From Mobula hypostoma (taxonomy: Eukaryota), in the NCBI RefSeq assembly GCF_963921235.1, contig NC_086115.1, positions 34,038,001 to 34,102,000 on the forward strand: a stretch of 64,000 nucleotides of DNA. The letters run 5' to 3'. How positions within the stretch are numbered: position 1 is the first letter of the stretch; the number at the start of each line of letters is the position of its first letter. This document shows positions 3,962 to 64,000 of this stretch, one piece after another. The position numbers and the translations under genes are program-made. The notes beneath the pieces are model-generated. The model worked only from the letters and a program-made list of their open reading frames with translations, was not told the origin of the DNA and did not search any database.

Positions 3962-3974
3962 AGTTTCATTTTCC
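3962..3974 (+). promoter_or_regulatory. ISRE of IFIT gene A
   Basis: AGTTTCATTTTCC matches the ISRE consensus AGTTTCNNTTTCY exactly and lies ~50 bp upstream of the TATA box of an IFIT gene. Confidence 0.85.
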
Positions 3975-4023: not shown

Positions 4024-4030
4024 TATAAAA
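4024..4030 (+). promoter_or_regulatory. TATA box of IFIT gene A
   Basis: TATAAAA 86 bp upstream of the exon-1 ATG; the spacing in gene C is similar (83 bp). Confidence 0.75.
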
Positions 4031-4109
4031 GATACCAGAAATCCTCCCGTTGAACAGTCACGTAGCTTTACCAGTCCTCTGAAGTACGGCCAGAATCCCA
4101 AACAGCACC

Positions 4110-4114
4110 ATGAG
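4110..4114 (+). CDS. IFIT: IFIT gene A, coding exon 1 (ATGAG)
   Basis: cagcaccATGAG|gtgagt gives a good Kozak context and a consensus donor. The phase-2 join to 7331 reads M-S-D-T-L-K. A 5-nt first coding exon is the standard IFIT gene architecture. Confidence 0.85.
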
Positions 4115-6393: not shown

Positions 6394-7330
6394 GATATTC
6401 TCAGGTGAAATGAAAAAGTTACTTGCAGCAACATCACATAAAAGCATTCACAAGAGAAACATAAATCTAAATTACACACAATTCTTACAAGACAGAAGAT
6501 AATTATAACAAAAATAAACTAAACCCATTTTAGTGCAAAGCATTCAGAGTGTTAAACAAGAGAGATTAAAATTATGCTGATTGGTTCAAGAACTGAATGG
6601 TTGAAGGGAATTAGCTGTTCTTGAATGTGATGGTACAGGATTCCAGGCTTCTGTATCTTCTGTCTGATGGTAGATGTGAGAATATGGCATGTCCCAGATG
6701 ATGGATGTTGCCTTCTTGATTTAAACTGGATATCCATGGTATTTTCATAGCATCCGCAGTAGCTTTAGGCTCTTCCTTGAGACTTCTGTCAACAGATTTT
6801 TCATGAACGTTTTTGTCTGATGATGGGTTTCATCATCACTGGCTAATTAGCCTTGCTACTAATTGCTTTTTAATTTGCCAGCCATGTATTCAGACAGAGA
6901 ACCACCTGACCGACATGGTGCCACAAAGTTGCTTTTTTCTTTCCTTTTCCCGGCTACTGAGTTAATAATCTGCTGGACTGGCCCAACCCTTACATGACAA
7001 ATTAGAATGTAAATATATCCTGCTCTCTTGCTTAATTTAAAACACATTCATTTAGCATAGTCAGAACACAGTGGTTATTTTAATCTGGCTGTCTCGGCTT
7101 ATTGGTTGGTATTTCCAGTACCAAGACTGTTTTCCACTGGGTTAATCACCATCTGGTAGATACTGGTCTGATCAGGCAGGGATTGAACTGTTCTGCACCC
7201 ACCTCTCCCTGCCTGTGCTCCAGCTCAGGAATTCAGAATTTGCTAATATTGTCAGTCCAAGCATTTAGCAGTTAGGATGGAGAATTGATTTCACATCAAT
7301 AATCTTTGATTACTTTGTGCTTTCATGCAG

Positions 7331-8780
7331 CGACACTCTGAAGGAATCCCTGTTTGAGAAACTCTGCCAACTTCAGTGTCACTTCACGTGGATTCCACAG
7401 AAGGACAACACTGACTTCAGTGATATGAAGCTTAGATTACAAGATTCTATAAAACTTGGTGTCAAATATCAAGCCACATCCTACAACCACCTTGCTTTTG
7501 TAAACTGTCAGCAAGGCAACTATGAAGAAGCCATTCAAAATTTAAAGGAAGCGGAAAAGATTTGGAGAGAGAACCACAACAATGAATTTGAAAGAAGAAG
7601 CATCATCACCTATGGAAACTTTGCCTGGGTGCATTACCACATGGGACAGCTGACCGAGGCCCAGTCCTACCTCGACAAGCTGGAGATAATCTGTGAACCG
7701 CTCAGTGATGGCCCTCGCTATACAGCAATGACCCCTGAGGTGTACGGGGAGAAGGGATGGTCATTGTTGAGTTCTGCTGCTACTTATTATGTGGAGGCAA
7801 AAGAATGTTTTGAGAAGGCTCTGGAGAAAGATTGCAACAATGTGGAGTGGACTGTGGGCTATGCGACAGCTTTGCTTCGTCTGGAAAATATTTCTGGTGT
7901 TCCAGAAAATCTGGAGCGAAGTCAGCCAGTGAGGTATCTGCGACGGGTGCTGGAGCTTGATCCAGATGACACAGTGGCCATGGTTAATTTGGCCCTAAAG
8001 TTGCAAGAGTTCAATGAAGCAGAGAAGGCAAATGAATTAGTTGAAGAAGCATTGAGGAAGACCCCAGATCTGCCATATGTGCTTCGCTATGCAGCAAAGT
8101 TTTACAGAATAGGAGGAGATGTCGATATCGCAATAGGCCTGTTGAAGAGAGCTTTAGAATTTACTCCATGCTCGTCCTTCTTACACCACCAAATCGGTAT
8201 CTGTTACAGGGGAAAGCTATTCACTCTGAAAAAGAAAGCAGGCAGCAACTATCCTGACAGAGCTACATTTCAACTGAAAGCTGAGTTTATCAGTAAGAGC
8301 AAATATCACTTTGAAAAGGCATTTGAACTCAAACCATTGTTTATTTTTGCAAAACTGGATTTTGCAGGAATCTGCTTAGAAAATGGAGAAGTAGCCCGAG
8401 CAGAGGAGATCTACAACAGTCTGCTGAGCTTGGAGGATCTTGCTCTGGATCATAAGCAGGCACTAGCTTTACAAGTTGGATTATTTGAACTGCACCACAA
8501 AAGATCTAAATCAAATGCCATCATCTATTTTCTGGATGGACTTAAGATCCATCATGGAAGTAAACAATGGAAGCTCTGTGACAGCAACTTGAGAAAGATC
8601 TTAAGAAAACAAATTCAGAGGAATCCAAGAAACAGCAAAGCCTTTGGAATTCTTGGGATGGTGCACCAGCTGGCTGGGGAGAAGGATGAGGCTGTTAAAT
8701 GCTTTGAAAAGGCCTTGGAATTTGATCCTGGCAATGAAGAATATCTCAATTCTCTTTCTGACTTACGCCTTTCAACTTAG
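7331..8780 (+). CDS. IFIT: IFIT gene A, exon 2: interferon-induced protein with tetratricopeptide repeats, IFIT1/IFIT5-like (484 aa spliced)
   Basis: Acceptor tttcatgcag|C. IFIT signature motifs CHFTW, YGNFAWVHYHM, EKGWSLL, PYVLRYAAKFYR, SSFLHHQIGICY and C-terminal DPGNEEYL..L..LRLS. Uninterrupted ORF. Confidence 0.96.
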
Positions 8781-10199: not shown

Positions 10200-10570
10200 G
10201 GGGGCATGTCCTGGATGGTGAGGGGCCTTAATGATAGATGCCATCTTCTTGAGTCACTGTCTTAGTCTTTTGTAAATATCCTCAAATGGTTGGGAGGCAC
10301 GTGCTCATGCTGAAGCTGACTGAACCATACGCACTGGCCCCTCCATACCAGACGGTGATGTAACCAGTCAGAATGTTGTCCACAGTACATCTGTAAAAAT
10401 TTGCTTTAAACTTTAGTGACATACCAAATTTCCTCAAACCCCCAAAGAAATATTGCCAGTGGAGTACCTTCTTTGTAATTGCACCAACATTTTGGGCCCA
10501 GGATTGATGTTCGGAGATGCTGACATCCAGGAAATTGAAACTGCTCACCTTTTCTACTGCTTACCCCTCA
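10200..10570 (-). mobile_element. Rex1/Babar-like LINE fragment
   Basis: Peptide SSFNFLDVSISEHQSW...FYRCTVDNILTGYITVWYG is the RT C-terminal region of this family. Confidence 0.7.
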
Positions 10571-13466: not shown

Positions 13467-15185
13467 TAAGACCATAAGACATAGGAGTAAAGTTAGGTCT
13501 GCCATACCCTAATTGCCTCTGGTTCATTACATAACACACTATCCAGTATAGCTGATCCCCTGGTAGGCTCAACAACAAACTGCTCCAAAAAGCAATCTCA
13601 TGGACATTCAACAAATTCACTCTCCTGAGCTCCATTACAAACCTGATTTTTCCAATCTACCTGCATGTTAAAGTCTCCCATGACTTTCGTACATTGCCCC
13701 TTTGTCATGCCTTTTTTATTTCCCACTCTATCGTCTATTCCACATCCCAGCTAACTGTTTAGAAGCCCGTATACAACTGCCATCAGGGTCCTCTGACACT
13801 TGCAGTTTCTTAACTCAACCCACAACATATCAACATCTTCTGATCCTATGTCAAATCTTTCTAATGATTTGATGCCATTCTTTACCAGCAGAGCCGTGCC
13901 ACCCCGTCTGCCTACCTTCCTATCCCTCCGATACAATGTGTAATTTTGGACGTTCAGCTCCCAACTACAACCATCCTTCAGCCACAATTCAGTGATGGGC
14001 ACAACATCATACCCAACAATCTGTAAAAGTGAAACAAGATCATCCACCTTACTTCTTATACCCCATGTATTAACATATAACACTTTGAATATTGTATTTG
14101 CTACCCCTTTTTGATTCTGTATCCTTAATGCACTGATACTCACCCTACTGCCTGCAATTATGTCCTATCATCTGCCTCCCCTTCCTGACAGTCTGACTGC
14201 ATGCTATCTTTGCTTTTTTCTTACTATCCACTCTATCCTGAGTCCCTTTATTCCTGTTCCTATCTCCTGCCAAATTAGTTTAAACTCACCCCAACAGCTC
14301 GAACAAACTTGCCCACAAGAATATTGGCCACCCTCAGGTTCAGGTGCAACCCATCCCTTTTGGATAGGTCATATCTGCTCCAAAAGAGGACCCAATGATC
14401 CAAGAACCTGAAGCCATGCCCTCTAAGCCAGCTTCTCAGCCATGCATTTATCTGCCATATCATCCTGTTTCTACCCTCACTGGTGCATGGCACAGGCAGC
14501 AGTCCAGAAATTACTACACTGGAGTTCCTGCTTCTCAACTTCCTGCCTAGCTCTCTAAATTCTCTTTTCAGGACCTCCTTGTTTTTCCTTCCTATGTCAT
14601 TGGTACCAACATGTACCAAAGCATTTGGCTGCTCTCCCTTCCCTTCCAAAATGCTGTGGATGCAAAGTGAGATGTCCCTGACCCTGGCACAAGGGAGGCA
14701 ACATACCATCCGGGTGTCCCATTCACATCCATGGAATCTCCTGTCTGTTCCTATGGCTATTGAGTCCCCTATCACTACAGCTCCCCTATTCTCCCTCTTT
14801 CCCTTTGGCCCCACCAACCCACGCTCAGTGTCAGTAGACTGGTCTCTGTGGCATTCCCCTGGGAGGTCATCCCCCACTTTAGTATCTAAAAAGGTATACT
14901 TATTATAAAGGGGAATGGCCACAGGGGTGCTCTGTGCTATCTACCTATTCACCTTCCCATTCCTTCTCATGACAGTCCTCCAGCTACCTGCCTCCTGCTA
15001 CTCAGGGATAACTACTCCCTGTAATTCTGATTGATGATCTCCTCACTCTCCCATACAAGCCGATGTCATCCAGCTGCTGTTTCATACCCCTAACACGGTC
15101 TTCACGGAGCTGCAGTTGGATGCAGTTCCCAGGGCTCCAACTCCCAGCATGAATAACACACTACAGCCATTTAAACTACACTAAG
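13467..15185 (-). mobile_element. CR1 LINE, internally deleted (ORF1 SGNH-esterase + start of ORF2 endonuclease joined directly to the 3' tail)
   Basis: ORF 14275-14922 has the GDS, HVGTND and DGLH esterase motifs. ORF 13751-14143 has the EN motifs (TELWL, RRDR..GGT). The CR1 3' tail (taagaccataagacatagg) at ~13467-13500 abuts the EN region, so the RT is missing. Confidence 0.85.
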
Positions 15186-15206
15186 TACCCCTGACACAGC
15201 AAGGGA

Positions 15207-16010
15207 ATGTTACCATTGGCCTTGAAGCTACCAGACTTCAATGAAAAGGAGGAAGCAAATGGGTTCGTCAAAGAACCACCACAGAAGGTCACTGATCTTC
15301 CATATGTGTTTCAGTATGCAGCAAAATTTTACAGACAAAAACAAGCTGTGGAGAAAGGTATCAAGCTGTTGAAGGAAGCTTTAGAAATAACTCCAAACTT
15401 CTTTCACAATGAAATGGCCATGTGTTACAATGATAAAAGAAGAAACATGCAGAGAACTCCATTCTGCAGGAACCATCACTGTCTTTTATCTGAATTGATC
15501 ATTCAATACAAGTATCACTTTGAAAAAACATATGAAAATAGTGTAAGTTCAGCAATTAAATCACAGCTGGACTTTGCAAACTTCTGTGAAGTAATTGGAG
15601 ACTCCTCCAAAGCAGACGAGATCTATACCAACTTGGTGAAGTTAAAGTATACTTGTCCAGAAAGTATGCAGAAAATATATTTATATGCTGGGTCGTTTGA
15701 ACTGCACCACAAAAAGTCTGAATCCGATGCTATTAATCTACTGCTGAAAGGCCTGAAGATTGATTATGATTCAAATGAACGCAAAATGTGTCAGAAGGAA
15801 TTGGAAAATTGGGCAGATGGGAAACTTTGCAGGTATCAACATGATGGTAAGGCCCTTGGTGTTAAAGCATTAGTGTATCAGCTGGATGGGAACAAGTCTA
15901 AAGCTATTGAATACTTTCAGAAAGCCTTGATGATTGATCCTTGCAATGAGGAATATTTGAGTGCACTTTGTGAATTATGCCTTTCCATCAAGAGTCAAAA
16001 TGATGATTGA
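15207..16010 (+). pseudogene. IFIT: IFIT copy B: 5'-truncated gene, C-terminal half still an open 267-aa ORF
   Basis: Aligns to genes A and C from the internal Met of AMVxLALKL to the C-terminus (DLPYVFQYAAKFYR, KYHFEK, QLDFA, DPCNEEYLSALCEL). The N-terminal ~220 codons are absent, with CR1 in their place. Confidence 0.85.
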
Positions 16011-25036: not shown

Positions 25037-28000
25037 AGAAACATAGAAACATAGAAAATAGGTGCAAGAGTAAGCCATTTGGCCCTTTGAGCCTGCACCG
25101 CCATTCAGTATGATCATGGCTGATCATCCAACTCAGAACCCTGTACCAGCCTTCCCTCCATACCCCCTGATCCCTTTAGCTACAAGGGCCATATCTAACA
25201 CCCTCTTAAATGTAGCCAATGAACTGGCCTCAACTGTTTCCTGTGGCAGAGAATTCCACAGACTCACCATTCTCTGTGTGAAGAAGATTTTCCTAATCTC
25301 GGTCCTAAAAGGCTTCCCCTTTATCCTCAAACTGTGACCCCTCATTATGGACTTCCCCAACATCGGGAACAATCTTCCTGCATCTAGCCTGTCCAATCCC
25401 TTTAGGATTTTATACGTTTCAATCAGATCCCCCCTCAATCTTCTAAATTCCAACGAGTATAAGCCTAGTTCATCCAGTCTTTCATCATATGAAAGTCCTG
25501 CCATCCCAGGAATCAATCTAGTGAACCTTCTTTGTACTCCCTCTATGGCAAGGATGTCTTTCCTCAGATTAGCTTACCAAAACCGCACACAATACTGCAG
25601 GTGTGGTCTCACCAAGGCCTTGTACAACTGCAGTAGTACCTCCCTGCTCCTGTACTCGAATCCTCTTGCTATAAATGCCAGCATACCATTCGCCTTTTTC
25701 ACCGCCTGCTGTACCTGCATGCCAACTTTCAATGACTGGTGTATAATGACACCCAGGTCTCATTGCACCTTCCCTTTTCCTAATCGGCCACCATTTATAT
25801 AATAATCTGTTCTCCTGTTTTTGCCACCAAAGTGGATAACTTCACATTTATCCACATTAAATTGCATCTGCCATGAATTTGCCAACTCACCTAACCTATC
25901 CAAGTCACCCTGCATCCTCTTAGCATCCTCCGCACAGCTAACACTGCCGCCCAGCTTCGTGTCATCCGCAAACTTGGAGATGCTGCATTTAATTCCCTCA
26001 TCCAAGTCATTAATATATATTGTAAACAACTGGGGTCCCAGCACTGAGCCTTGCGGTACCCCACTAGTCACTGCCTGCCATTCTGAAAAGGTCCCATTTA
26101 TTCCCACTCTTTGCTTCCTGTCTGCCAACCAATTTTCTATCCACATCAATACCTTACCCCCAATACCGTGTGCTTTAAGTTTGCACACTAATCTCCTGTG
26201 TGGGACCTTGTCAAAAGCCTTTTGAAAATCCAAATATATCACATCCACTGGTTCTCCCCTACTCTACTAGTTACATCCTCAAAAAATTCTATGAGATTCG
26301 TCACACATGATTTTCCTTTCTCAAATCCATGCTGACTTTGTCCGATCATTTCACCGCTTTCCAAATGCGCTGTTATCACATCTTTGATAACTGACTCTAG
26401 CAGTTTCCCCACCACCGATGTTAGGCTAACCGGTCTATTATTCCCCGGTTTCTCTCTCCCTCCTTTTTTAAAAAGTGGGGTTACATTAGCACCCTCCAAT
26501 CCTCAGGAATTAGTCCAGAATCTAAAGAGTTTTGAAAAAGTATCACCAATGCATCCACTACTTCTTGGGCTACTTCCTTAAGCACTCTGGGATGCAGACC
26601 ATCTGGCCCTGGGGATTTATCTGCCTTTAATCCCTTCAATTTACCTAACACCACTTCCCTACTAACATGTATTTCCCTTAGTTCCTCCACCTCACTGGAC
26701 CCTCTGTCCCCTACTATTTCTGGAAGATTATTTATGTCCTCCTTAGTGAAGACAGAACCAAAGTAATTATTCAATTGGTCTGCCATGTCCTTGCTCCCAA
26801 TAATCAATTCACCTGTTTCTGTCTGTAGGGGACCTACATTTGTCTTTACCAGTCTTTTCCTTTTTACATATCTATAAAAGCTTTTACAGTCAGTTTTTAT
26901 GTTCCTTGCCAGTTTTCTCTCATAATCTTTTTTCCCCTTTCTAATTAAGCCCTTTGTCCTCCTCTGCTGAACTCTGAATTTCTCACAGTCCTCAGGTGAG
27001 CCACTTTTTCTGGCTAATTTGTATGCTTCTTCTTTGGAATTGATATTATCTCTAATTTCTCTTGTCAGCCATGGGTGCACTACCTTCCTTGATTTATTCT
27101 TTTGCCAAACTGGGATGAACAATTGTTGTAGTTCATCCATGCAACCTTTAAATGCTTGCCATTGCATATCCACCGTCAACCCTTTAAGAGTCATTTGCCA
27201 GTCTATCTCAGCTAATTCACGTCTCATACCTTCAAAGTTACCCTTCTTTAAGTTCAGAACCTTTGTTTCTGAATTAACTATATCACTCTCCATCTTAATG
27301 AAGAATTCCACCATATTATGGTCACTCTTACCCAAGGGGCCTCTCACGACAAGATTGCTAATTAACCCTTCCTCATTGCTCAATACCCAGTCTAGAATAG
27401 CCTGCTCTCTAGTCGGTTCCTCGACATGTTGGTTCAAAAAACCATCCCGCATACATTCCAAGAAATCCTCTTCCTCAGCACCCTTACCAATTTGGTTCAC
27501 CCAATCTACATGTAGATTGAAGTTACCCATTATAACTGCTGTTCCTTTATTGCACACATTTCTAATTTCCTGTTTAATACCATCCCCAACCTCACTACTA
27601 CTGTTAGGTGGCCTGTACACAACTCCCACCAGCGTTTTCTGCCCCTTAGTGTTATGCAGCTCTTCCTATATCGATTCCACATCCTCCCGGCTTATGTCCT
27701 TCCTTTCTATTGTGTTAATCTCCTCTCTAACCAGCAACGCCACCCCACCTCCTTTTCTTTCATGTCTATCCCTCCTGAATATTGAATATCCCTGAATGTT
27801 GAGCTCCCATCCTTGGTCACCCTGGAGCCATGTCTCTGTGATCCCAACTATATCATATTCATTAATAACAATCTGCACTTTTAATTCATCCACCTTGTTA
27901 CGAATGCTCCTTGCATTGACACACAAAGCCTTCAGGCGCGCTTTTACGACTCTCTTAGCCCTTATACAATTATGTTGAAAAGTGGCCCTTTTTAATGCTT

Positions 28001-32639: not shown

Positions 32640-35600
32640 GACCATAGACAATAAAACATAGGTGCAGAATTAGCCCATTTATCCCATTGAGTCCACTCCA
32701 CCATTACATCATGGCTGATCCCGGATCAGATTTAACCCCATACACCTGTCCTCTCACCATATCCCTTGATGCCCCGACCAATCAGGAATCCATTCACCTC
32801 CGCTTTAAATATACCCGCAGACTTGGTCTCTACTGCAGTCTGTGGTAATGCATTCCACAGATCCTCCACTCTTTCTCTCCTTACTTCTGTTCTGAAAGGT
32901 CACCCCTCAATTTTGAGGCTGTGTCCTTTAGTTCTGGATATTCTCACCAGAGGAAACATCCTCTGCACATCCAACTTATCTAGACTTTTCAGTGAGATAG
33001 GTTTTGATGAGGTCCCCCTGCATTCTTCTAAATTCCAGTGAATACAGGCTCAAAGCTGCCAAACACTCCTCATATGTTAACTCCTTCATTCCTGGAATCA
33101 CTCTTGTGAACCTCCTCTGGACTCTCTCCAATGACAATACATCTACATCTTTTCTGAGATATGGGATCCAAAACTGTTGACAATAGTCCAAGTGTGGCCT
33201 TACCAGTATCTTAGAAAGCTTTAGCATCATCTCCTTGCTTTTATATTCTATTCCCCTTGAAATAAATGCCAACATTGCATTTGCCTTCTTTACCACAGGC
33301 TCAACCTGTGAATTAACCTTCTGGGCGTCTTGCATGAGGACTTCTAAGTCCCTTTGCACCTCTGATGTTTGAATTTTCTCCCCATTTTGATAAGAATCTC
33401 CACTATTGTTCCTTTTACTAAAATGCATTATTATACATTTCCCAACACTGTATTCAATCTGCCACTTTTTTGCCCATTCTTCCAATTTGTCTAAGCCCTG
33501 TTGCAATCGCATTGCTTCCTCAGCACTACCTACTCAAACCCATCTTTGTATCATCCGCAACCTTTGCCACAAAGCCATCAATTCCACTATCTAAATCATT
33601 GACAAGCGATGTGAAAAGTAGAGGTCCTGATACTGACCCCTGAGGAACACCACTAGTCACTGGCAGCCAAACAGAAAAGGCCCCCTTTATTCCCACTCAC
33701 TGCCTCCAGCCCATCAACCATTCCTCTATCCATGCCATTATATTTCCTGTGGTACCATAACATTTTATCTTGTTAAACAGCATCATGAGAAGCACCTTAT
33801 CAAACGCCTTCTGAAAATACAAGTAAATGACATCCACTGCCTTTCCTTTGTCCACTATGCTTGTTACTTCCTCGAAGATTTGTCAGATTTGTCAGATTTG
33901 TCAGGCAAGATAGCCTTTACAGAAACTGTGCTGACTTTGACTTATTTTATCATTCGTCTCCAAGTACCCCAAAACCTTGGCTTTAATAATGGACTCCCAA
34001 CACTTTCCCAACCACTGAGGTTGGGATAGCTGGCCTATAATTTCCTTCCTTTTGTCTTCCTCCCTTCTCGAGGAGTGGAGAGACACTTGCAATTTTCCAG
34101 TCCTCTGGGACTAAGCCAGAATCAAGTGACTCTTGAAAGATCATGACCAATGTATCTGTTATCTGTTCAGCAACCTCTTTCAGGAATGTGGGATGTAGTA
34201 CATCTGGTCCAGTAAACTTAACCATCTTAAGACCTTTCAGATTTACTAGCACTTTTTCCTTTGTAATAGCAAAGGCACTTAATCCAACTCTCTGACACTC
34301 ACAGACCGCTAGCATACAGCTATACCTTCCACAGTAAAAGACTGAAGCAAAATACTTAATAAATTCATTTGCCATTTCTTTGTCTCCCATTACTACCTCA
34401 CCAGCATCATTTTCCAGTGGTCCAATATCAACTCTCAACTCCCTTTTATTCTTTATATAACTGAAAAAAAAATTAGTATTCTGCTTTATATGATCAGCTT
34501 GTTTGTCTACATATTTCATCATTTCCCTTCTTATAGCTTGTTTAATTGCCTTTTTCTGGGTTGTAAAAGCTTGCCAATTATTCAACTTCCCACTCACTTT
34601 TGCTACCTTATACACCCTTTCCTTGCCTTTTATGCAGTCTTTAACTTCCCTTGTCAGCCATGGCTGCCGAGCTCTGCTGTTTGAGAACCTCTTCTGTGGG
34701 ACATATCTATCCTGAACTATTCCCAGAAACTTCAGCCACCTCTGTTCTGACGTTATCCCCACCAGTATCCCACTCCAATCCATCTGGGCAATCTCCTCTC
34801 TCATGCCTCTGTAAATCGCTTTATTCTATTGTAATGTTGATACATGTGACTTATGCTTCTCCCTCTCAAATTGCAGTATGAATTCAATCATTTGTGATGA
34901 CTGCCTCCTAAGGGTTCCTTTATGTTAAGTTGACTAATAAGATCTGGGTTATTACAAAATGCCCAATCCTAAGATAACCTTTCCCCTTATAGGCTTAAGT
35001 ACAAGTTGCTCTAAAAGCCACCTCATAAGCATTCAATAAACTCACTTTTTTGTGATTCAACACCAGCCTGATTTTCCCAATCCCTTTGCATACTGAAGTC
35101 CCCCATTACAATTGTGTCTTTACCCTTATTACATGCCTTTTCCAGCTCCCTTTGCAATCTCAACTCCACATGTTGGCTACTACTTGGAAGCTTATATATG
35201 ATTCCCATTATGGCACTATTTTACCCTTGCAGTTTTTTAACCCTACCCACAAATATTTGACATTCTCTGACCCCATGTCATCTCTTTCTAAAGATGTAAT
35301 TCCATCTCTTACCAACTGAGCCACGCTGCTGCCTATGCCTTCCTGCCTCTCCTTTCAATACAAAGTATATCCTCTGATGTTAAACTCCCAACTGTGGCCA
35401 TCTTTCAGCCACGACTCAGTGATGCCCACAACGTCATACCGACCATTCTCTAAATACGCCACTGGTTTGTCCACCTGATTCCTAACGCTACGTACATTCA
35501 GATATATCACCACCAGTCCTGTATTCTTCATCCTTATGGATTTTGCCTCTGTGGTACAATTTAACTCTTTGCTCTGTCTGTAGTTGTACTGAATGATTGG

Positions 35601-39505: not shown

Positions 39506-39577
39506 AGCTTTGCTTTCTTCATCCACTTTGAGACAAATATTTTGATAGATTTTAGCTCCACCCGGACACTATATAAA
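39506..39577 (+). promoter_or_regulatory. Gene C promoter: degenerate ISRE (AGCTTTGCTTTCT, 39506-39518) and TATATAAA (39570-39577)
   Basis: Positionally homologous to the ISRE and TATA box of gene A. Confidence 0.65.
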
Positions 39578-42001: not shown

Positions 42002-43436
42002 CAACACACCGGGAGATGTATTGAAAGAGAAGCTCGATCAACTGCAGTGTCACTTCACATGGAGACCACAGAAGGAAACTATTGACTTGGAAGATCTGAT
42101 GCACAGATTGCAAGATTCTATCGATATGAATATGAAGTATAAAGATCAGGCCTACAACCAATTTGCTTTTTTAAATTGTTTGCAGGGCAAATGTGTGGAA
42201 GCAATTCAAAATTTAAAGGAAGCTGAAAAAATTCTGAGGGAGAACCACAAAGATGAATTTGAAAGAAGAAGCATCATCATCTATGGAAACTTTGCCTGGG
42301 TACATTACCACATGGGACAGCTGACCGAGTCCCAGTCCTACCTCGAAAAGCTGGAGATGATCTGTAAACCGCTCAGTGACGGCCCTCGCTATACAGCAAA
42401 GATCCCTGAGGTGTACGGGGAGAAGGGATGGTCATTGTTGAATTCTGCTTCTGAATTCTATGAGGAGGCAAAGGAATGCTTTGCAAAGGCTCTGGAGCAA
42501 GACCCTGACAACACCGAGTGGATAATGGGATATGCGACTGCACTGTCTCGTCTGGAATCAATGTCTGGAACCCCAGAGAGTCGTGATCAGAGTCAGTCAG
42601 TGAAGTATTTCCGACGAGTACTGGAGCTTGATCCAGATGATGCTGTGGCCATGGTGCTGTTGGCTCTAAAACTGCTGAGGTTACAACAAAATGAGGAAGC
42701 ACGTAAATTCGTTGAACAAGCATTGCAGAAGACCCCAGATCTTCCATATGTGCTTCGCTATGCTGCAAAATATTATAGACAAGTAGGATCTGTGGAGAAA
42801 GCAATCGAGCTGTTGAAAAAAGCATTAGAGTTAACTCCACACTCTGGTTTCTTATACCACCAACTTGGATTGTGCTACAGAAAGAAGCTGAAATACACTC
42901 GTAGCAGATACGCTCGCAATCCTGAATTTCAGCAGAGAGCTGAGTTGATCAATCTATGCAAGTATCACTTTGAAAAGGCTTTTGAGCACCGTCCAAGGTC
43001 ATTTATTAGAGCACAACTGGACTTTGCAGACATCTGCATAACAAGTGGGGAGTATTACAGAGCAGAGGAGATCTACAGTAGATTGAAGGAGTTAGTGGAC
43101 ATTCGACCAGAAAACATGCAGAGCATATGTCTGGAAGCTGGGTTATTTGAACTAAACCAGAAGAATTCTGAAACAAATGCTGTTCGCCTCTTCCTGAAAG
43201 GAGTGAAAATTGAATATAACTCAATAGAACGGGAAAAATGTCGCATGAATTTGGAGGAGTGGACAGATAGAAAACTTAGTGTAAATGCACAAGACAGCGA
43301 GGCTCTTGGTGTCAGAGCATTTCTGTATCAGCTGGATGGGAACCAGGGTAGAGCAGCTGAGTACTTTGAGATGGCCTTGGAGTTTGATCCTGACAATGAG
43401 GAATATGTGAGTGCTCTTTCTCGGTTACGTATCTGA
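42002..43436 (+). CDS. IFIT: IFIT gene C, exon 2: IFIT1/IFIT5-like TPR protein (479 aa spliced)
   Basis: Acceptor ttttctctcttgcag|C. Motifs CHFTW, YGNFAWVHYHM, PYVLRYAAKYYR, GFLYHQLGLCY and DPDNEEY. Uninterrupted ORF. Confidence 0.96.
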
Positions 43437-52868: not shown

Positions 52869-53290
52869 CAACACACAAAGAGATTTGTTGAAAGAGAAGC
52901 TCGATCAGCTTCAATGTCACTTCACGTGGGACCCTCAGAAGGGAAACGTTGACTTGGAAGATATGACATACAGACTGTGAGATGCTATAAAAATCTGGGT
53001 GTGAAATATCAAACCATGTTTCACAATCAACTCGCTTTCATAAATGTCTGCAGGGAAACAATAAAGAAGCCATTCAGAACTTAATTGAAACCCTTGTCAC
53101 CCTGCATTTCGCCAGAAAGCAAAGTTGTTTAATCAATACAAGCATCATTTTGGAAAGGCATTTGAGCACCGTCCAATATCAGCTATTAAACCACAACTGG
53201 ATTCTGCAGTTGTAAGTGAAAGAAATGGAGAGTATTCCAAAGTGAAGGAGATCTACAGTAATCTTTTGAAATTAGATGATATTCATCCAA
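52869..53290 (+). pseudogene. IFIT: IFIT copy D pseudogene (stop, frameshifts, ~690-nt internal deletion, 3' truncation)
   Basis: Acceptor ctaacag|C, then NTQRDLLKEKLDQLQCHFTWDPQKGNVDLEDMTYRL* with an in-frame TGA at 52978. It jumps from AIQNL to QYKHHFGKAFEHRP..QLDSA and ends at DIHP. Confidence 0.92.
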
Positions 53291-61399: not shown

Positions 61400-62200
61400 G
61401 ATGTTATTGATGTTCTCGGTCTTAAAGACATTGTGTCTGACTATTGGTGGCTGTCAGGGGAAAAGCACCACTTCTCTGCCCCTAGATCTGGAGCTATTCT
61501 CAGGCTTCTGGCAAAAAAATTTTATTTTAGATCACTAAAATCCAGTTTCCGAACAAAATCACTTTCAAGTGACATCAGAGTAAGATGACTCAGCCTGTCC
61601 TGTCCCATTGTGGATCTGAGCCTATGTAGTTGCCATTATCAGGCCTGCCAAATATGTCACTGGAGCCTAGGATAGCCAGTCCCCTCTCAACCAAAAACTT
61701 CACAATCACCAACACTCTTCTCGATACATCGGTCCAGTAGACACACTCTGACTCGAACTGTTTTTGCAGTTCTGTATCTATTCTTCTGCTGTCAGACGCC
61801 AGCATAATGTAGGTCAGTATCATTTTCCTGCGGTGTTCACTATTTTCATGCTCTCCTGTGCACTCAGCGGCATGTTTCCAGTCGCTAAAGCCAGTTTTGA
61901 AGATGGACAGACAGTTACCATCACTGAAGATGCTGCATGCAAAACAAAACACACAGCCGGTGGAAGGGGAATCTAAGAGCCATTGCTTTGATATGTACTC
62001 ACCATTTACGAGCTTGAGTTTGAAGTGAAATTTGGAGGAAAATATGTCTCTGCTGTTTGTATACTCGTTCCAAAGCTTTGATATCCACATTCTTATTCTG
62101 GCAGGACTCCGGCCCTTTCTTAGCCCAGTACGCTCGGACTGAATCATCTAATGTTTCCTTTCCCCAGCGAGCAGAATCAGTGCTGTAAGGATCCTCAGTA
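61400..62200 (-). mobile_element. hAT transposon, internally deleted (TTF-type Zn finger/DUF4371 fused to dimerisation domain)
   Basis: WLLDS..VFCFAC..GFSDWKH..HENS..H and FLVERGLA..NGNY, then in another frame RSTMGQDRLSHLTLMSLE. Confidence 0.85.
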
Positions 62201-62209
62201 GTGGTAACG

Positions 62210-63933
62210 TTAAGGGAAAAGTTTTATGAGAGAAAACTGGCAGGGAAGATAAAACCTGACTGTAAAAGCTTTTATAGATATGTGAAAAGAAAAAGATTGG
62301 TTAAGACAAATGTAGGTCCCCTACAGACAGAAACAGGAAAATTGATTATGGGGAACAAGGACATGGCAGACCAATTGAATATCTACTTTGGTTCTGCCTT
62401 CACTAAGGAGGATATAAATAATCTTCCGGAAATAGTAGGGGACAGAGGGTCTAGTGAGATGGAGGAACTGAGGGAAATACATGTTAGTAGGGAAGTGGTG
62501 TTAGGTGAATTGAAGGGAATAAAGGCAGATAAATCCCCAGGGCCAGATAGTCTGCATCCCAGAGTGCTTAAGGAAGTAGCCCAAGAAATAGTGGATGCAT
62601 TAGTGATAATTTTTCAAAACTCTTTAGATTCTGGACTAATTCCTGAGGATTGGTGGGTGGCTAATGTAACCCTGCTTTTTGAAAATGCAGGGAGAGAGAA
62701 ACTGGAGAATTATAGACCAGTTAGCCTAACATCGGTGGTGGGGAAAATGCTAGAGACAGTTATCAAAGATGTGATAACAGCACACTTGGAAAGCGGTGAA
62801 ATCATCGGACAAAGTCAGCATGGATTTGTGAAAGGAAAATCATGTCTGACGAATCTCATAGAATTTTTTGAGGATGTAACTAGTAGAGTGGATAGGGCAG
62901 AACCTGTGGATGTGGTATATTTGGATTTCAAAAGGCTTTTGTCAAGGTCCCACACAGGAGATTAATGTGCAAACTTAAAGCACACGGTATTGGGGGTAAG
63001 GTATGGATGTGGATAGAGAATTGGTTGGCAGACAGGAAGCAAAGAGTGGGAATAAACGGGGCCATTTCAGAATGGCAGGCAGTGACTAGTGGGGTACCGC
63101 AAGGCTCAGTGGTGGGACCCCAGTTGTTTACAATATATATTAATGACTTAGATGAGGGAATTAAATGCAACATCTCCAAGTTTGCGGATGACACGAAGCT
63201 GGGCGGCAGTGTTAGCTGTGAGGAGGATGCTAAGAGGATGCAGGGTCACTTGGATAGGTTAGGTGAGTGGGCAAATTCATGGCAGATGCAATTTAATGTG
63301 GATAAATGTGAAGTTATCCACTTTGGTGGCAAAAACAGGAAAACAGATTATTATCTGAATGGTGGCCGATTAGAAAAAGGGGAGGTGCAGCGAGACCTGG
63401 GTGTCATCATACACCAGTCATTGAAAGTAGGCATGCAGGTACAGAAGGCGGTGAAAAAGGCGAATGGTATGCTGGCATTTATAGCAAGAGGATTCGAGTA
63501 CAGGAGCAGGAAGGTACTACTGCAGTTGTACAAGGCCTTGGTGAGACCACACCTGGAGTATTGTGTGCAGTTTTGGTCCCCTAATCTGAAGAAAGACATT
63601 CTTACCATAAAGGGAGTACAAAGAAGGTTCACCAGATTGATTCCTGGGATGGCAGGCCTTTCATATGATGAAAGACTGGATCGACTAGGCTTATACTTCT
63701 TGGAATTTAGAAGATTGAGGGGGGATCTTATGGAAACGTATAAAATCCTAAAGGAATTGGACAGGCTAGATGCAGGAAGATTGTTCCCGATGTTGGGGAA
63801 GTCCAGAACGAGGGGTCACAGTTTGAGGATAAAGGGGAAGCCTTTTAGGACCGAGATTAGGAGAAACTTCTTCACACAGAGAGTGGTGAATCTTTGGAAT
63901 TCTCTGCCACAGGAAACAGTTGAGGCCAGTTCG
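62210..63933 (+). mobile_element. Young CR1 ORF2 fragment (same subfamily as 25037-28360)
   Basis: Near-identical protein to the 25-28 kb copy, with one frameshift at ~62930. Confidence 0.93.
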
Positions 63934-63934
63934 T

Positions 63935-64000
63935 TTCAAAGTTGCTGGTGAACGCAGCAGGCCAGGCAGCATCTCTAGGAAGAGGTACAATCGACGTTTC
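63935..64000 (-). mobile_element. Penelope tail inserted in CR1, cut by the window edge
   Basis: Reverse complement of 51952-52015, beginning GAAACGTCGA (the 3' half of the hammerhead). Confidence 0.8.

Follow-up and report, generated by a model that had tools for sequence, protein, structure and literature searches.

Two intact IFIT genes of the devil ray Mobula hypostoma, here denoted A and C, lack both the lysine and the glutamine of the 5'-end pocket of human IFIT5 and IFIT1 (K150/K151 and Q41/Q42, respectively), and the missing positive charge is probably supplied in both proteins by an invariant neighboring residue, Arg35, as our analysis of the aligned pocket residues indicates. The two genes lie in a 64,000-nucleotide stretch of contig NC_086115.1 (positions 34,038,001 to 34,102,000 of the forward strand; NCBI RefSeq assembly GCF_963921235.1), hereafter the window, in whose coordinates all positions are given. 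Judging from the alignments and the tree of the family, the replacements of Lys by Ser or Asn and of Gln by Ser are old, lineage-wide, maintained states and not local defects. We lean toward the view that A and C are functional interferon-type clamps of RNA 5' ends in which the phosphate-binding charge would reside on Arg35, with residue 147, the site of the lysine, tuning affinity or specificity among many paralogues. IFIT1 and IFIT5 are textbook cases of self versus non-self RNA discrimination by the 5' end, with a mechanism known almost wholly from human and mouse.

Two IFIT genes and the residues of their RNA tunnel

Residue equivalences were derived from phmmer alignments to the PDB structures of IFIT5 (3zgq/4hor) and IFIT1 (5w5h, 6c6k and 5udi), with which MAFFT agrees. 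The pocket residues and the parts of the two genes are located as follows:

7434..7448, plus strand: RLQDS of gene A, which holds Arg35 and Ser39
7434..7436, plus strand: Arg35 of gene A, opposite IFIT1 R38 and IFIT5 T37
7446..7448, plus strand: Ser39 (TCT) of gene A, opposite IFIT5 Q41 and IFIT1 Q42
7770..7772, plus strand: Ser147 (AGT) of gene A, in EKGWSLL-S, opposite IFIT5 K150 and IFIT1 K151
42105..42119, plus strand: RLQDS of gene C, with Arg opposite T37/R38 and Ser opposite Q41/Q42
42441..42443, plus strand: Asn (AAT) of gene C, in EKGWSLL-N, opposite IFIT5 K150 and IFIT1 K151
3963..3973, minus strand: interferon-stimulated response element (ISRE) of the gene A promoter, an exact GAAANNGAAAS, reading AGTTTCATTTTCC on the plus strand, about 140 bp 5' of exon 1
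4024..4031, plus strand: TATA box of gene A, TATAAAAG, about 80 bp 5' of the ATG, read from the letters
4110..4114, plus strand: coding part of exon 1 of gene A (ATGAG), a match to ATGAGGTGAG, with the donor GTGAGT next to it
7331..8780, plus strand: exon 2 of gene A, almost all of the coding sequence including the stop codon, with the acceptor ...tttcatgcag directly before C
39506..39517, plus strand: degenerate ISRE-like or interferon regulatory factor (IRF)-like element of the gene C promoter, AGCTTTGCTTTC, with 2 mismatches to AGTTTCNNTTTC, weak evidence of a promoter element
39570..39577, plus strand: TATA box of gene C, TATATAAA
39653..39657, plus strand: coding part of exon 1 of gene C (ATGAG), with the donor GTGAGT next to it
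42002..43436, plus strand: exon 2 of gene C, IFIT1/5-type coding sequence including the stop codon, with the acceptor ...tctcttgcag directly before C

The formal alignment confirms every residue call that an earlier note on this DNA had made. In gapless HMMER alignments to the PDB sequences of IFIT5 and IFIT1, the K150/K151 site is occupied by Ser in A and by Asn in C and the Q41/Q42 site by the Ser of RLQDS in both, whereas the IFIT1-like Arg (the R38 equivalent) and the equivalents of R186, Y250, R253 and H287/Q288 are kept. An alignment artefact is ruled out: the HMMER alignments are gapless over both EKGW.LL and RLQDS with identical flanks, the flanks of the lysine site being conserved (EKGW.LL / EEGWALL), and MAFFT is concordant.

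Altogether, both proteins retain the equivalents of IFIT5 K48, Y156, R186, Y250, R253, Y254, K257, R260, H287 and Q288, among which we take R253 and H287/Q288 to be R255 and H289/Q290 in IFIT1 numbering. Relative to the triphosphate-binding set of IFIT5, the differences are T37 to Arg, Q41 to Ser, K150 to Ser (A) or Asn (C) and E33 to Asp, with Y250, R253 and Q288 kept. Relative to the cap0-binding set of IFIT1, K151 is replaced by Ser or Asn, I183 by Thr and Y218 by Val, with R38, R187, W147 and L150 kept, as are the equivalents of D34 (Asp31 in the ray), K49 and E176; the mapping of the IFIT1 L46/T48 loop carries a one-residue ambiguity between HMMER and MAFFT.

The membership of A and C in the IFIT family is evident from full-length phmmer searches of all PDB chains, in which protein A matches human IFIT5 with E=4.5e-102 and human IFIT1 with E=5e-99, and protein C matches human IFIT1 with E=3.7e-104 and human IFIT5 with E=2.1e-98, compared to about 1e-9 to 1e-11 for the best non-IFIT natural protein. 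The nearest database proteins carry the names IFIT5-like or IFIT1-like, and both A and C contain the motif QCHFTW, of the N-terminal CHFTW type. An AlphaFold2 model of the gene A product, built on a 58-sequence alignment, consists of 24 helices (mean predicted local distance difference test score, pLDDT, 92; predicted template modelling score, pTM, 0.87). In a Foldseek comparison of this model with the PDB, the best match was IFIT5 with triphosphate (PPP) RNA (4HOR; template modelling score, TM, 0.90), followed by IFIT1-RNA complexes (TM 0.84-0.89), apo IFIT5 (TM 0.81-0.83), IFIT2 (TM 0.61) and IFIT3 in the IFIT2-IFIT3 dimer (TM 0.49), a ranking of IFIT5 and IFIT1 above IFIT2 and IFIT3 that identifies the gene A protein as a predicted monomeric clamp of the IFIT1/5 type.

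By sequence, A and C belong to a large elasmobranch-specific expansion of such predicted monomeric IFIT1/IFIT5-type RNA clamps. From the conservation of the tunnel residues and the fold, we infer that both proteins bind the 5' end of single-stranded RNA in the central tunnel. The proposal of the earlier note that the RNA tunnel is retained is borne out by the low relative rates of the tunnel residues (see below) and by the proximity of the gene A model to RNA-bound IFIT5.

Both genes are intact, consist of two exons and are ordinary annotated members of the IFIT family. In both, exon 1 provides only the ATG and 2 nucleotides, and the acceptors, with a polypyrimidine-AG, are at 7330/7331 (A) and 42001/42002 (C). 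The joined exons of gene A encode 484 amino acids, identical to the database protein P0001, the conceptual product of gene C comprises 479 amino acids, and the two proteins are 59.8% identical. Gene A has a canonical ISRE and a TATA box, whereas gene C has only the two-mismatch ISRE-like element along with its TATA box. The ISRE core GAAANNGAAAS occurs 8 times in the window against 1.98 expected, a count that none of 100 shuffles reached; further matches are found at 6939-6949, in the intron of gene A, and at 10531, 11801, 22424 and 37002.

Distribution and evolution of the pocket residues

Proteins A and C were aligned with 120 close homologues from sharks, rays, skates and sawfish, yielding a set of 122 elasmobranch IFITs. 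At the K150 site, these proteins contain Ser (56), Lys (22), Arg (18), Thr (13), Gly (7), Asn (4) or Ile (2), that is, neither Lys nor Arg in 82 of the 122 (67%), and the non-basic residues are Ser, Thr, Gly or Asn in 80 cases of these 82. The Q41/Q42 site is occupied by Ser in 102 proteins, with Ala in 7, Leu and Thr in 5 each and Ile in 3, and the T37/R38 site is basic in 122/122 (109 Arg, 13 Lys). With 67% of the elasmobranch IFITs lacking Lys and Arg at the one site and 102/122 having Ser at the other, two adjacent genes with both features are to be expected. The whole elasmobranch expansion is thus characterized by Ser at the glutamine site and by Arg35, and most of its members have a small residue at the lysine site.

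The cap-side differences from IFIT1 are similarly widespread, with Thr for I183 in 102/122, Val for Y218 in 75/122 and Asp for N216 in 73/122 of the elasmobranch proteins. With these clade-wide changes, the side chains of the pocket would be smaller and more polar than in IFIT1, which would allow for a genuine difference in the preferred 5' end.

The lysine is also far from universal outside the elasmobranchs. An exhaustive HMMER search of 50%-identity representatives yielded 52 near-full-length vertebrate IFITs, 29 of which have Lys at the K150 site. Other residues are found in the chimaera Callorhinchus milii (XP_007895004; Asn), Xenopus laevis IFIT5 (XP_041424678; Thr), Hyperolius (Leu), two proteins of Gastrophryne (Ser in both), Hymenochirus (Asn), Conger (Asp) and Aldrovandia (Thr). 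The earlier note had described the lysine and the glutamine as conserved across IFITs. This description holds for the amniote proteins and for many, although not all, bony-fish representatives, but is not true of the family as a whole, given the absence of the lysine from most elasmobranch paralogues and from chimaera, frog and eel IFITs, and the prevalence of Ser at the glutamine site.

We constructed a maximum likelihood tree of 127 proteins with IQ-TREE (LG+G4 model; support from the Shimodaira-Hasegawa-like approximate likelihood ratio test, SH-aLRT), rooted on bony-vertebrate IFITs. Several early-branching shark lineages have Lys or Arg at site 147 (Ile in one) and Leu or Ile at the glutamine site. 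In a clade of 110 rows (support 99), the glutamine site is mostly Ser, with a few Thr and Ala, and residue 147 is mostly small; nested in this clade are two batoid clades with Arg or Lys and a shark clade with Lys, most members of which have His in place of Y250. Site 147 has changed between basic and non-basic states at least 10 times on the tree, with 7 changes forced by well-supported branches, compared to about 38 with shuffled labels. Gene A falls within a 26-protein clade (support 100) that comprises sawfish, skate, stingray and Mobula sequences, all with Ser, Thr or Gly at 147, and gene C within a clade of 28 proteins (support 99) from sawfish, stingrays and Mobula, all with a small residue. 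The sisters of gene C (P0081 and P0084) have Ser at 147 and the Asn codon AAT is one step from AGT; the Asn of gene C is therefore recent. Mobula hypostoma itself also has paralogues of the R type (P0060, P0086 and P0101) and of the K type (P0115), apparently on the same chromosome-scale contig.

The relative evolutionary rate of site 147 is 1.53 (rank 97 of 482), whereas the other tunnel residues evolve at rates of 0.12-0.91. The tunnel overall thus appears to be under purifying selection, with 147 as its sole labile member.

Two further features of the family were observed. The nearest paralogues of gene A (P0002, P0003, P0004, P0007, P0009, P0014 and P0015) combine Thr at the lysine site with a one-residue insertion right after it (for example, LLTFGRRVYF), and P0002 has two Arg about one helical turn beyond the lysine site; the segment 147-151 is a hotspot of indels and substitutions in the gene A clade, and site 150 belongs to the 40 fastest-evolving sites. 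A well-supported batoid clade that spans sawfish to Mobula (P0030, P0038, P0058, P0060, P0077, P0091, P0093, P0095, P0101, P0107 and P0110) has Arg at the K150 site together with Y250 to Lys, Y254 to Asn and H287 to Asp, and its tunnel is remodelled more than those of A and C.

Proposed relocation of the charge and competing explanations

Details of the residue contacts were taken from two studies and a review (PMC3950709, PMC9677429 and PMC13197388, respectively). In IFIT5, T37 contacts and stabilizes K150, which in turn touches the beta and gamma phosphates, and cap0 binding by IFIT1 requires R38 (PMC3950709). Given the contact between T37 and K150, the ray residues 35 and 147 would be spatial neighbors. 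We classified the aligned IFITs with an intact tunnel, defined as those that keep W143, R183, R/K252, K/R256, R/K259 and Q287 (n=121), by the charge of this pair, each protein being counted irrespective of shared ancestry:

both residues basic (IFIT1 type): 46/121
only residue 35 basic (the type of A and C): 74/121
only residue 147 basic (IFIT5 type): 1/121
neither residue basic: 0/121

All IFITs in which neither residue is basic are truncated or have degraded tunnels. These counts fit a need for at least one positive charge from the pair, with Arg35 replacing the lysine in A and C. A column-by-column scan detected no compensating fixed Lys or Arg elsewhere in the proteins with a non-basic residue 147; the largest shift was from 0.03 to 0.35, at a position where gene A has Ile. 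Because of Arg35, the notion that the charge is simply missing is probably wrong. The earlier note had itself raised, against its idea of altered specificity, the case of a nearby basic residue filling the same site, and Arg35, at a position that is basic throughout the elasmobranch set, plausibly is such a residue.

Under a relocation of the charge, the ray IFITs would still thread the 5' end of single-stranded RNA into the tunnel, and Arg35, Lys45, Arg183, Tyr249, Arg252, Lys256 and Arg259 would hold the 5' phosphates there. The pair 35/147 would carry the same number of charges as Thr37 and Lys150 of IFIT5, albeit on another helix. Residue 147 could then serve as a tuning position at which paralogues toggle between basic and small residues, and through this toggling the members of a multigene antiviral array might come to differ in affinity or in their preference for PPP versus cap-type 5' ends.

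Several points weigh against this reading. The counts for the 35/147 pair take no account of common descent, and the covariation test comprises only 5-8 independent contrasts, too few for power. Human IFIT1 has both R38 and K151, both reported to be needed, so that Arg alone may not suffice, and no electrostatic contact in IFIT5 is stronger than that of K150 (PMC9677429). The cap-side residues differ from those of human IFIT1 as well, which leaves room for a true change of specificity. The literature searched gave RNA-binding data for no non-mammalian IFIT of this type.

The main rival explanation, put forward in the earlier note, is that the tunnel is kept but the loss of the lysine and the glutamine has moved 5'-end specificity away from PPP and cap0 toward 5'-monophosphate, 5'-OH, other caps or internal RNA, creating a third class of IFIT ligand; we consider this possible although rather improbable. 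The premise that the lysine contacts the 5'-PPP is well founded: the literature identifies K150 as the strongest phosphate contact of IFIT5 (PMC9677429, PMC3950709). Specifically, it is the top electrostatic partner of the triphosphate nucleotide, making 4 hydrogen bonds to the triphosphate and Mg-water, followed by R253, R186 and K48 (PMC9677429). The substitution K150M weakens binding to PPP-RNA 15-70-fold without abolishing it, the dissociation constant (KD) being 100 nM instead of 1.4 nM according to one study and 204 nM instead of 13 nM according to another, and a single substitution, R186H, uncouples 5'-p from 5'-ppp binding, indicating that one residue can separate the two; published results on Q41E conflict (PMC9677429). 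All these contacts of K150 with the beta and gamma phosphates, along with the loss of affinity in K150M, would favor a specificity change upon loss of the lysine. The same direction is suggested by the small polar nature of nearly all replacements, which together with Val for Y218 and Thr for I183 on the cap side is consistent with a roomier pocket, by the recurrence of the combination of Arg35 with a small residue 147 in the chimaera and frogs, and by the repeated toggling of site 147, as expected of a specificity-determining position. However, a positive charge at the site of the lysine is probably preserved by Arg35, the remaining residues that contact phosphates and backbone are all conserved, and K150M IFIT5 still binds PPP-RNA at about 100-200 nM, so that loss of the lysine alone predicts weaker rather than different binding. 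A new RNA specificity of A and C is therefore possible, and the more specific proposal that IFITs with Arg35 and a small residue 147 form a third pocket type recognizing a different 5'-end chemistry (a bulkier or non-canonical cap, 5'-P or 5'-OH) seems unlikely.

Two other explanations fit the pattern of conservation poorly. The paralogues without the lysine could have ceased to bind RNA and become partners or regulators of the K/R paralogues, as mammalian IFIT3 is for IFIT1. The presence of K-type and R-type paralogues in the same genome (P0115 as well as P0060, P0086 and P0101), apparently on the same contig, and the activity of mammalian IFITs in hetero-complexes are compatible with such a role. 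Nevertheless, it appears quite improbable: all other tunnel residues are conserved and evolve slowly; the mammalian IFIT2/3-like representatives show the opposite pattern, having kept the lysine and lost other tunnel residues; the predicted fold is that of the monomeric IFIT5/IFIT1 clamp (TM 0.90) and not that of IFIT2 (0.61) or IFIT2-IFIT3 (0.49); and the C-terminus is IFIT5-like.

Alternatively, A and C could be decaying, relaxed duplicates in a fast-turnover cluster. The window indeed contains the IFIT relics B and D and many insertions of long interspersed nuclear elements (LINEs), and site 147 evolves faster than average. This possibility is largely refuted, and we assign it hardly any probability: A and C have full-length reading frames, canonical splice sites and promoters, and the Ser/Thr state is common to the batoid clade of gene A and many sharks, hence ancient. 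Furthermore, the tunnel residues of A and C are conserved, unlike those of relic B, in which the R253 equivalent is Gln and the H287/Q288 equivalents are Asn and Glu, a picture of relaxed constraint that contrasts with A and C.

The window has a G+C content of 42.5%, with no N runs. On the plus strand, it contains the two intact IFIT genes and the two IFIT relics, and several fragments of non-LTR (long terminal repeat) retrotransposons are present as well. The features other than genes A and C are:

15189..16010, plus strand: IFIT relic B, the C-terminal half only, matching residues 211-481 in tblastn
52870..53289, plus strand: IFIT relic D, in which an N-terminal piece interrupted by in-frame stops is joined to a middle-region piece that matches residues 308-370
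14275-14922, minus strand: GDSL-esterase-like open reading frame (ORF; Pfam PF13472)
25760-27629 (minus), 32976-34804 (minus) and 62201-63951 (plus): non-LTR retrotransposon fragments with endonuclease (PF14529) and reverse-transcriptase (PF00078) ORFs
61590-62147, minus strand: ORF of 185 amino acids rich in Cys and His (…CVFCFACSIF…), without a Pfam match at E<=0.001

Relic D is an internally deleted pseudogene. The GDSL-esterase-like ORF, with relic B directly downstream, is what we take to be a LINE ORF1 type, which suggests that relic B was truncated by a retroelement insertion. The retrotransposon copies near 26.5 kb and near 62.2 kb have long near-identical protein stretches in common. 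The Cys- and His-rich ORF may be a transposase-derived fragment.

Relation to known IFIT proteins

Human IFIT5, a monomeric clamp of 5'-PPP and 5'-P single-stranded RNA (4HOR/4HOT/3ZGQ), is homologous to A and C over the full length, with about 38% identity; it is the best structural match of the gene A model, shares the IFIT5-like C-terminus and likewise has one positive charge at the 37/150 pair. The two ray proteins differ from it in that the triad T37/Q41/K150 is R/S/S in A and R/S/N in C, with the charge on helix 2 rather than on the K150 helix, and the Glu33 equivalent is Asp in both.

With human IFIT1 (5UDI/5W5H/6C6K), which binds cap0 and PPP-RNA, the ray genes share the R38, D34, K49, W147, L150, E176 and R187 equivalents as well as the two-exon structure; the promoter of gene A also contains a canonical ISRE, and that of C only the degenerate ISRE-like element. 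The differences are Ser or Asn for K151, Ser for Q42, Thr for I183, Val for Y218 and Asp for N216, all of them elasmobranch-wide states. No evidence of an IFIT1-type C-terminal dimer or IFIT3-binding motif was found in A and C.

The closest parallels to the configuration of A and C are the IFITs of Callorhinchus milii, Xenopus laevis (IFIT5) and Hyperolius, which also combine a basic residue 35 with a non-basic residue 147 in an otherwise intact tunnel. These anamniote IFITs arose independently; they are only 35-52% identical, with Leu (chimaera) or Gln (Xenopus) at the glutamine site. Neither a biochemical characterization of these three proteins nor a description of the RNA pocket of cartilaginous-fish IFITs was found in the literature searched. 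As far as the sequences indicate, the pocket with Arg35 and a small residue 147 is ancient, predominates in the cartilaginous fishes and is found again in chimaeras and frogs; its recognition appears to be new.

In cartilaginous fishes, a lysine deemed critical thus seems to have been dispensable over hundreds of millions of years as long as the neighboring Arg is present, and its position toggles repeatedly inside a large paralogue array. If the ray IFITs simply bind PPP or cap0 RNA, they represent an ordinary case of charge relocation in a conserved pocket. If, on the other hand, they do form a third pocket type, it would stand beside the IFIT5 type (Thr37 and Lys150, PPP only) and the IFIT1 type (Arg38 and Lys151, cap0 and PPP), and the toggling of residue 147 would be the way for an expanded IFIT array to divide up the 5' ends of viral RNAs.

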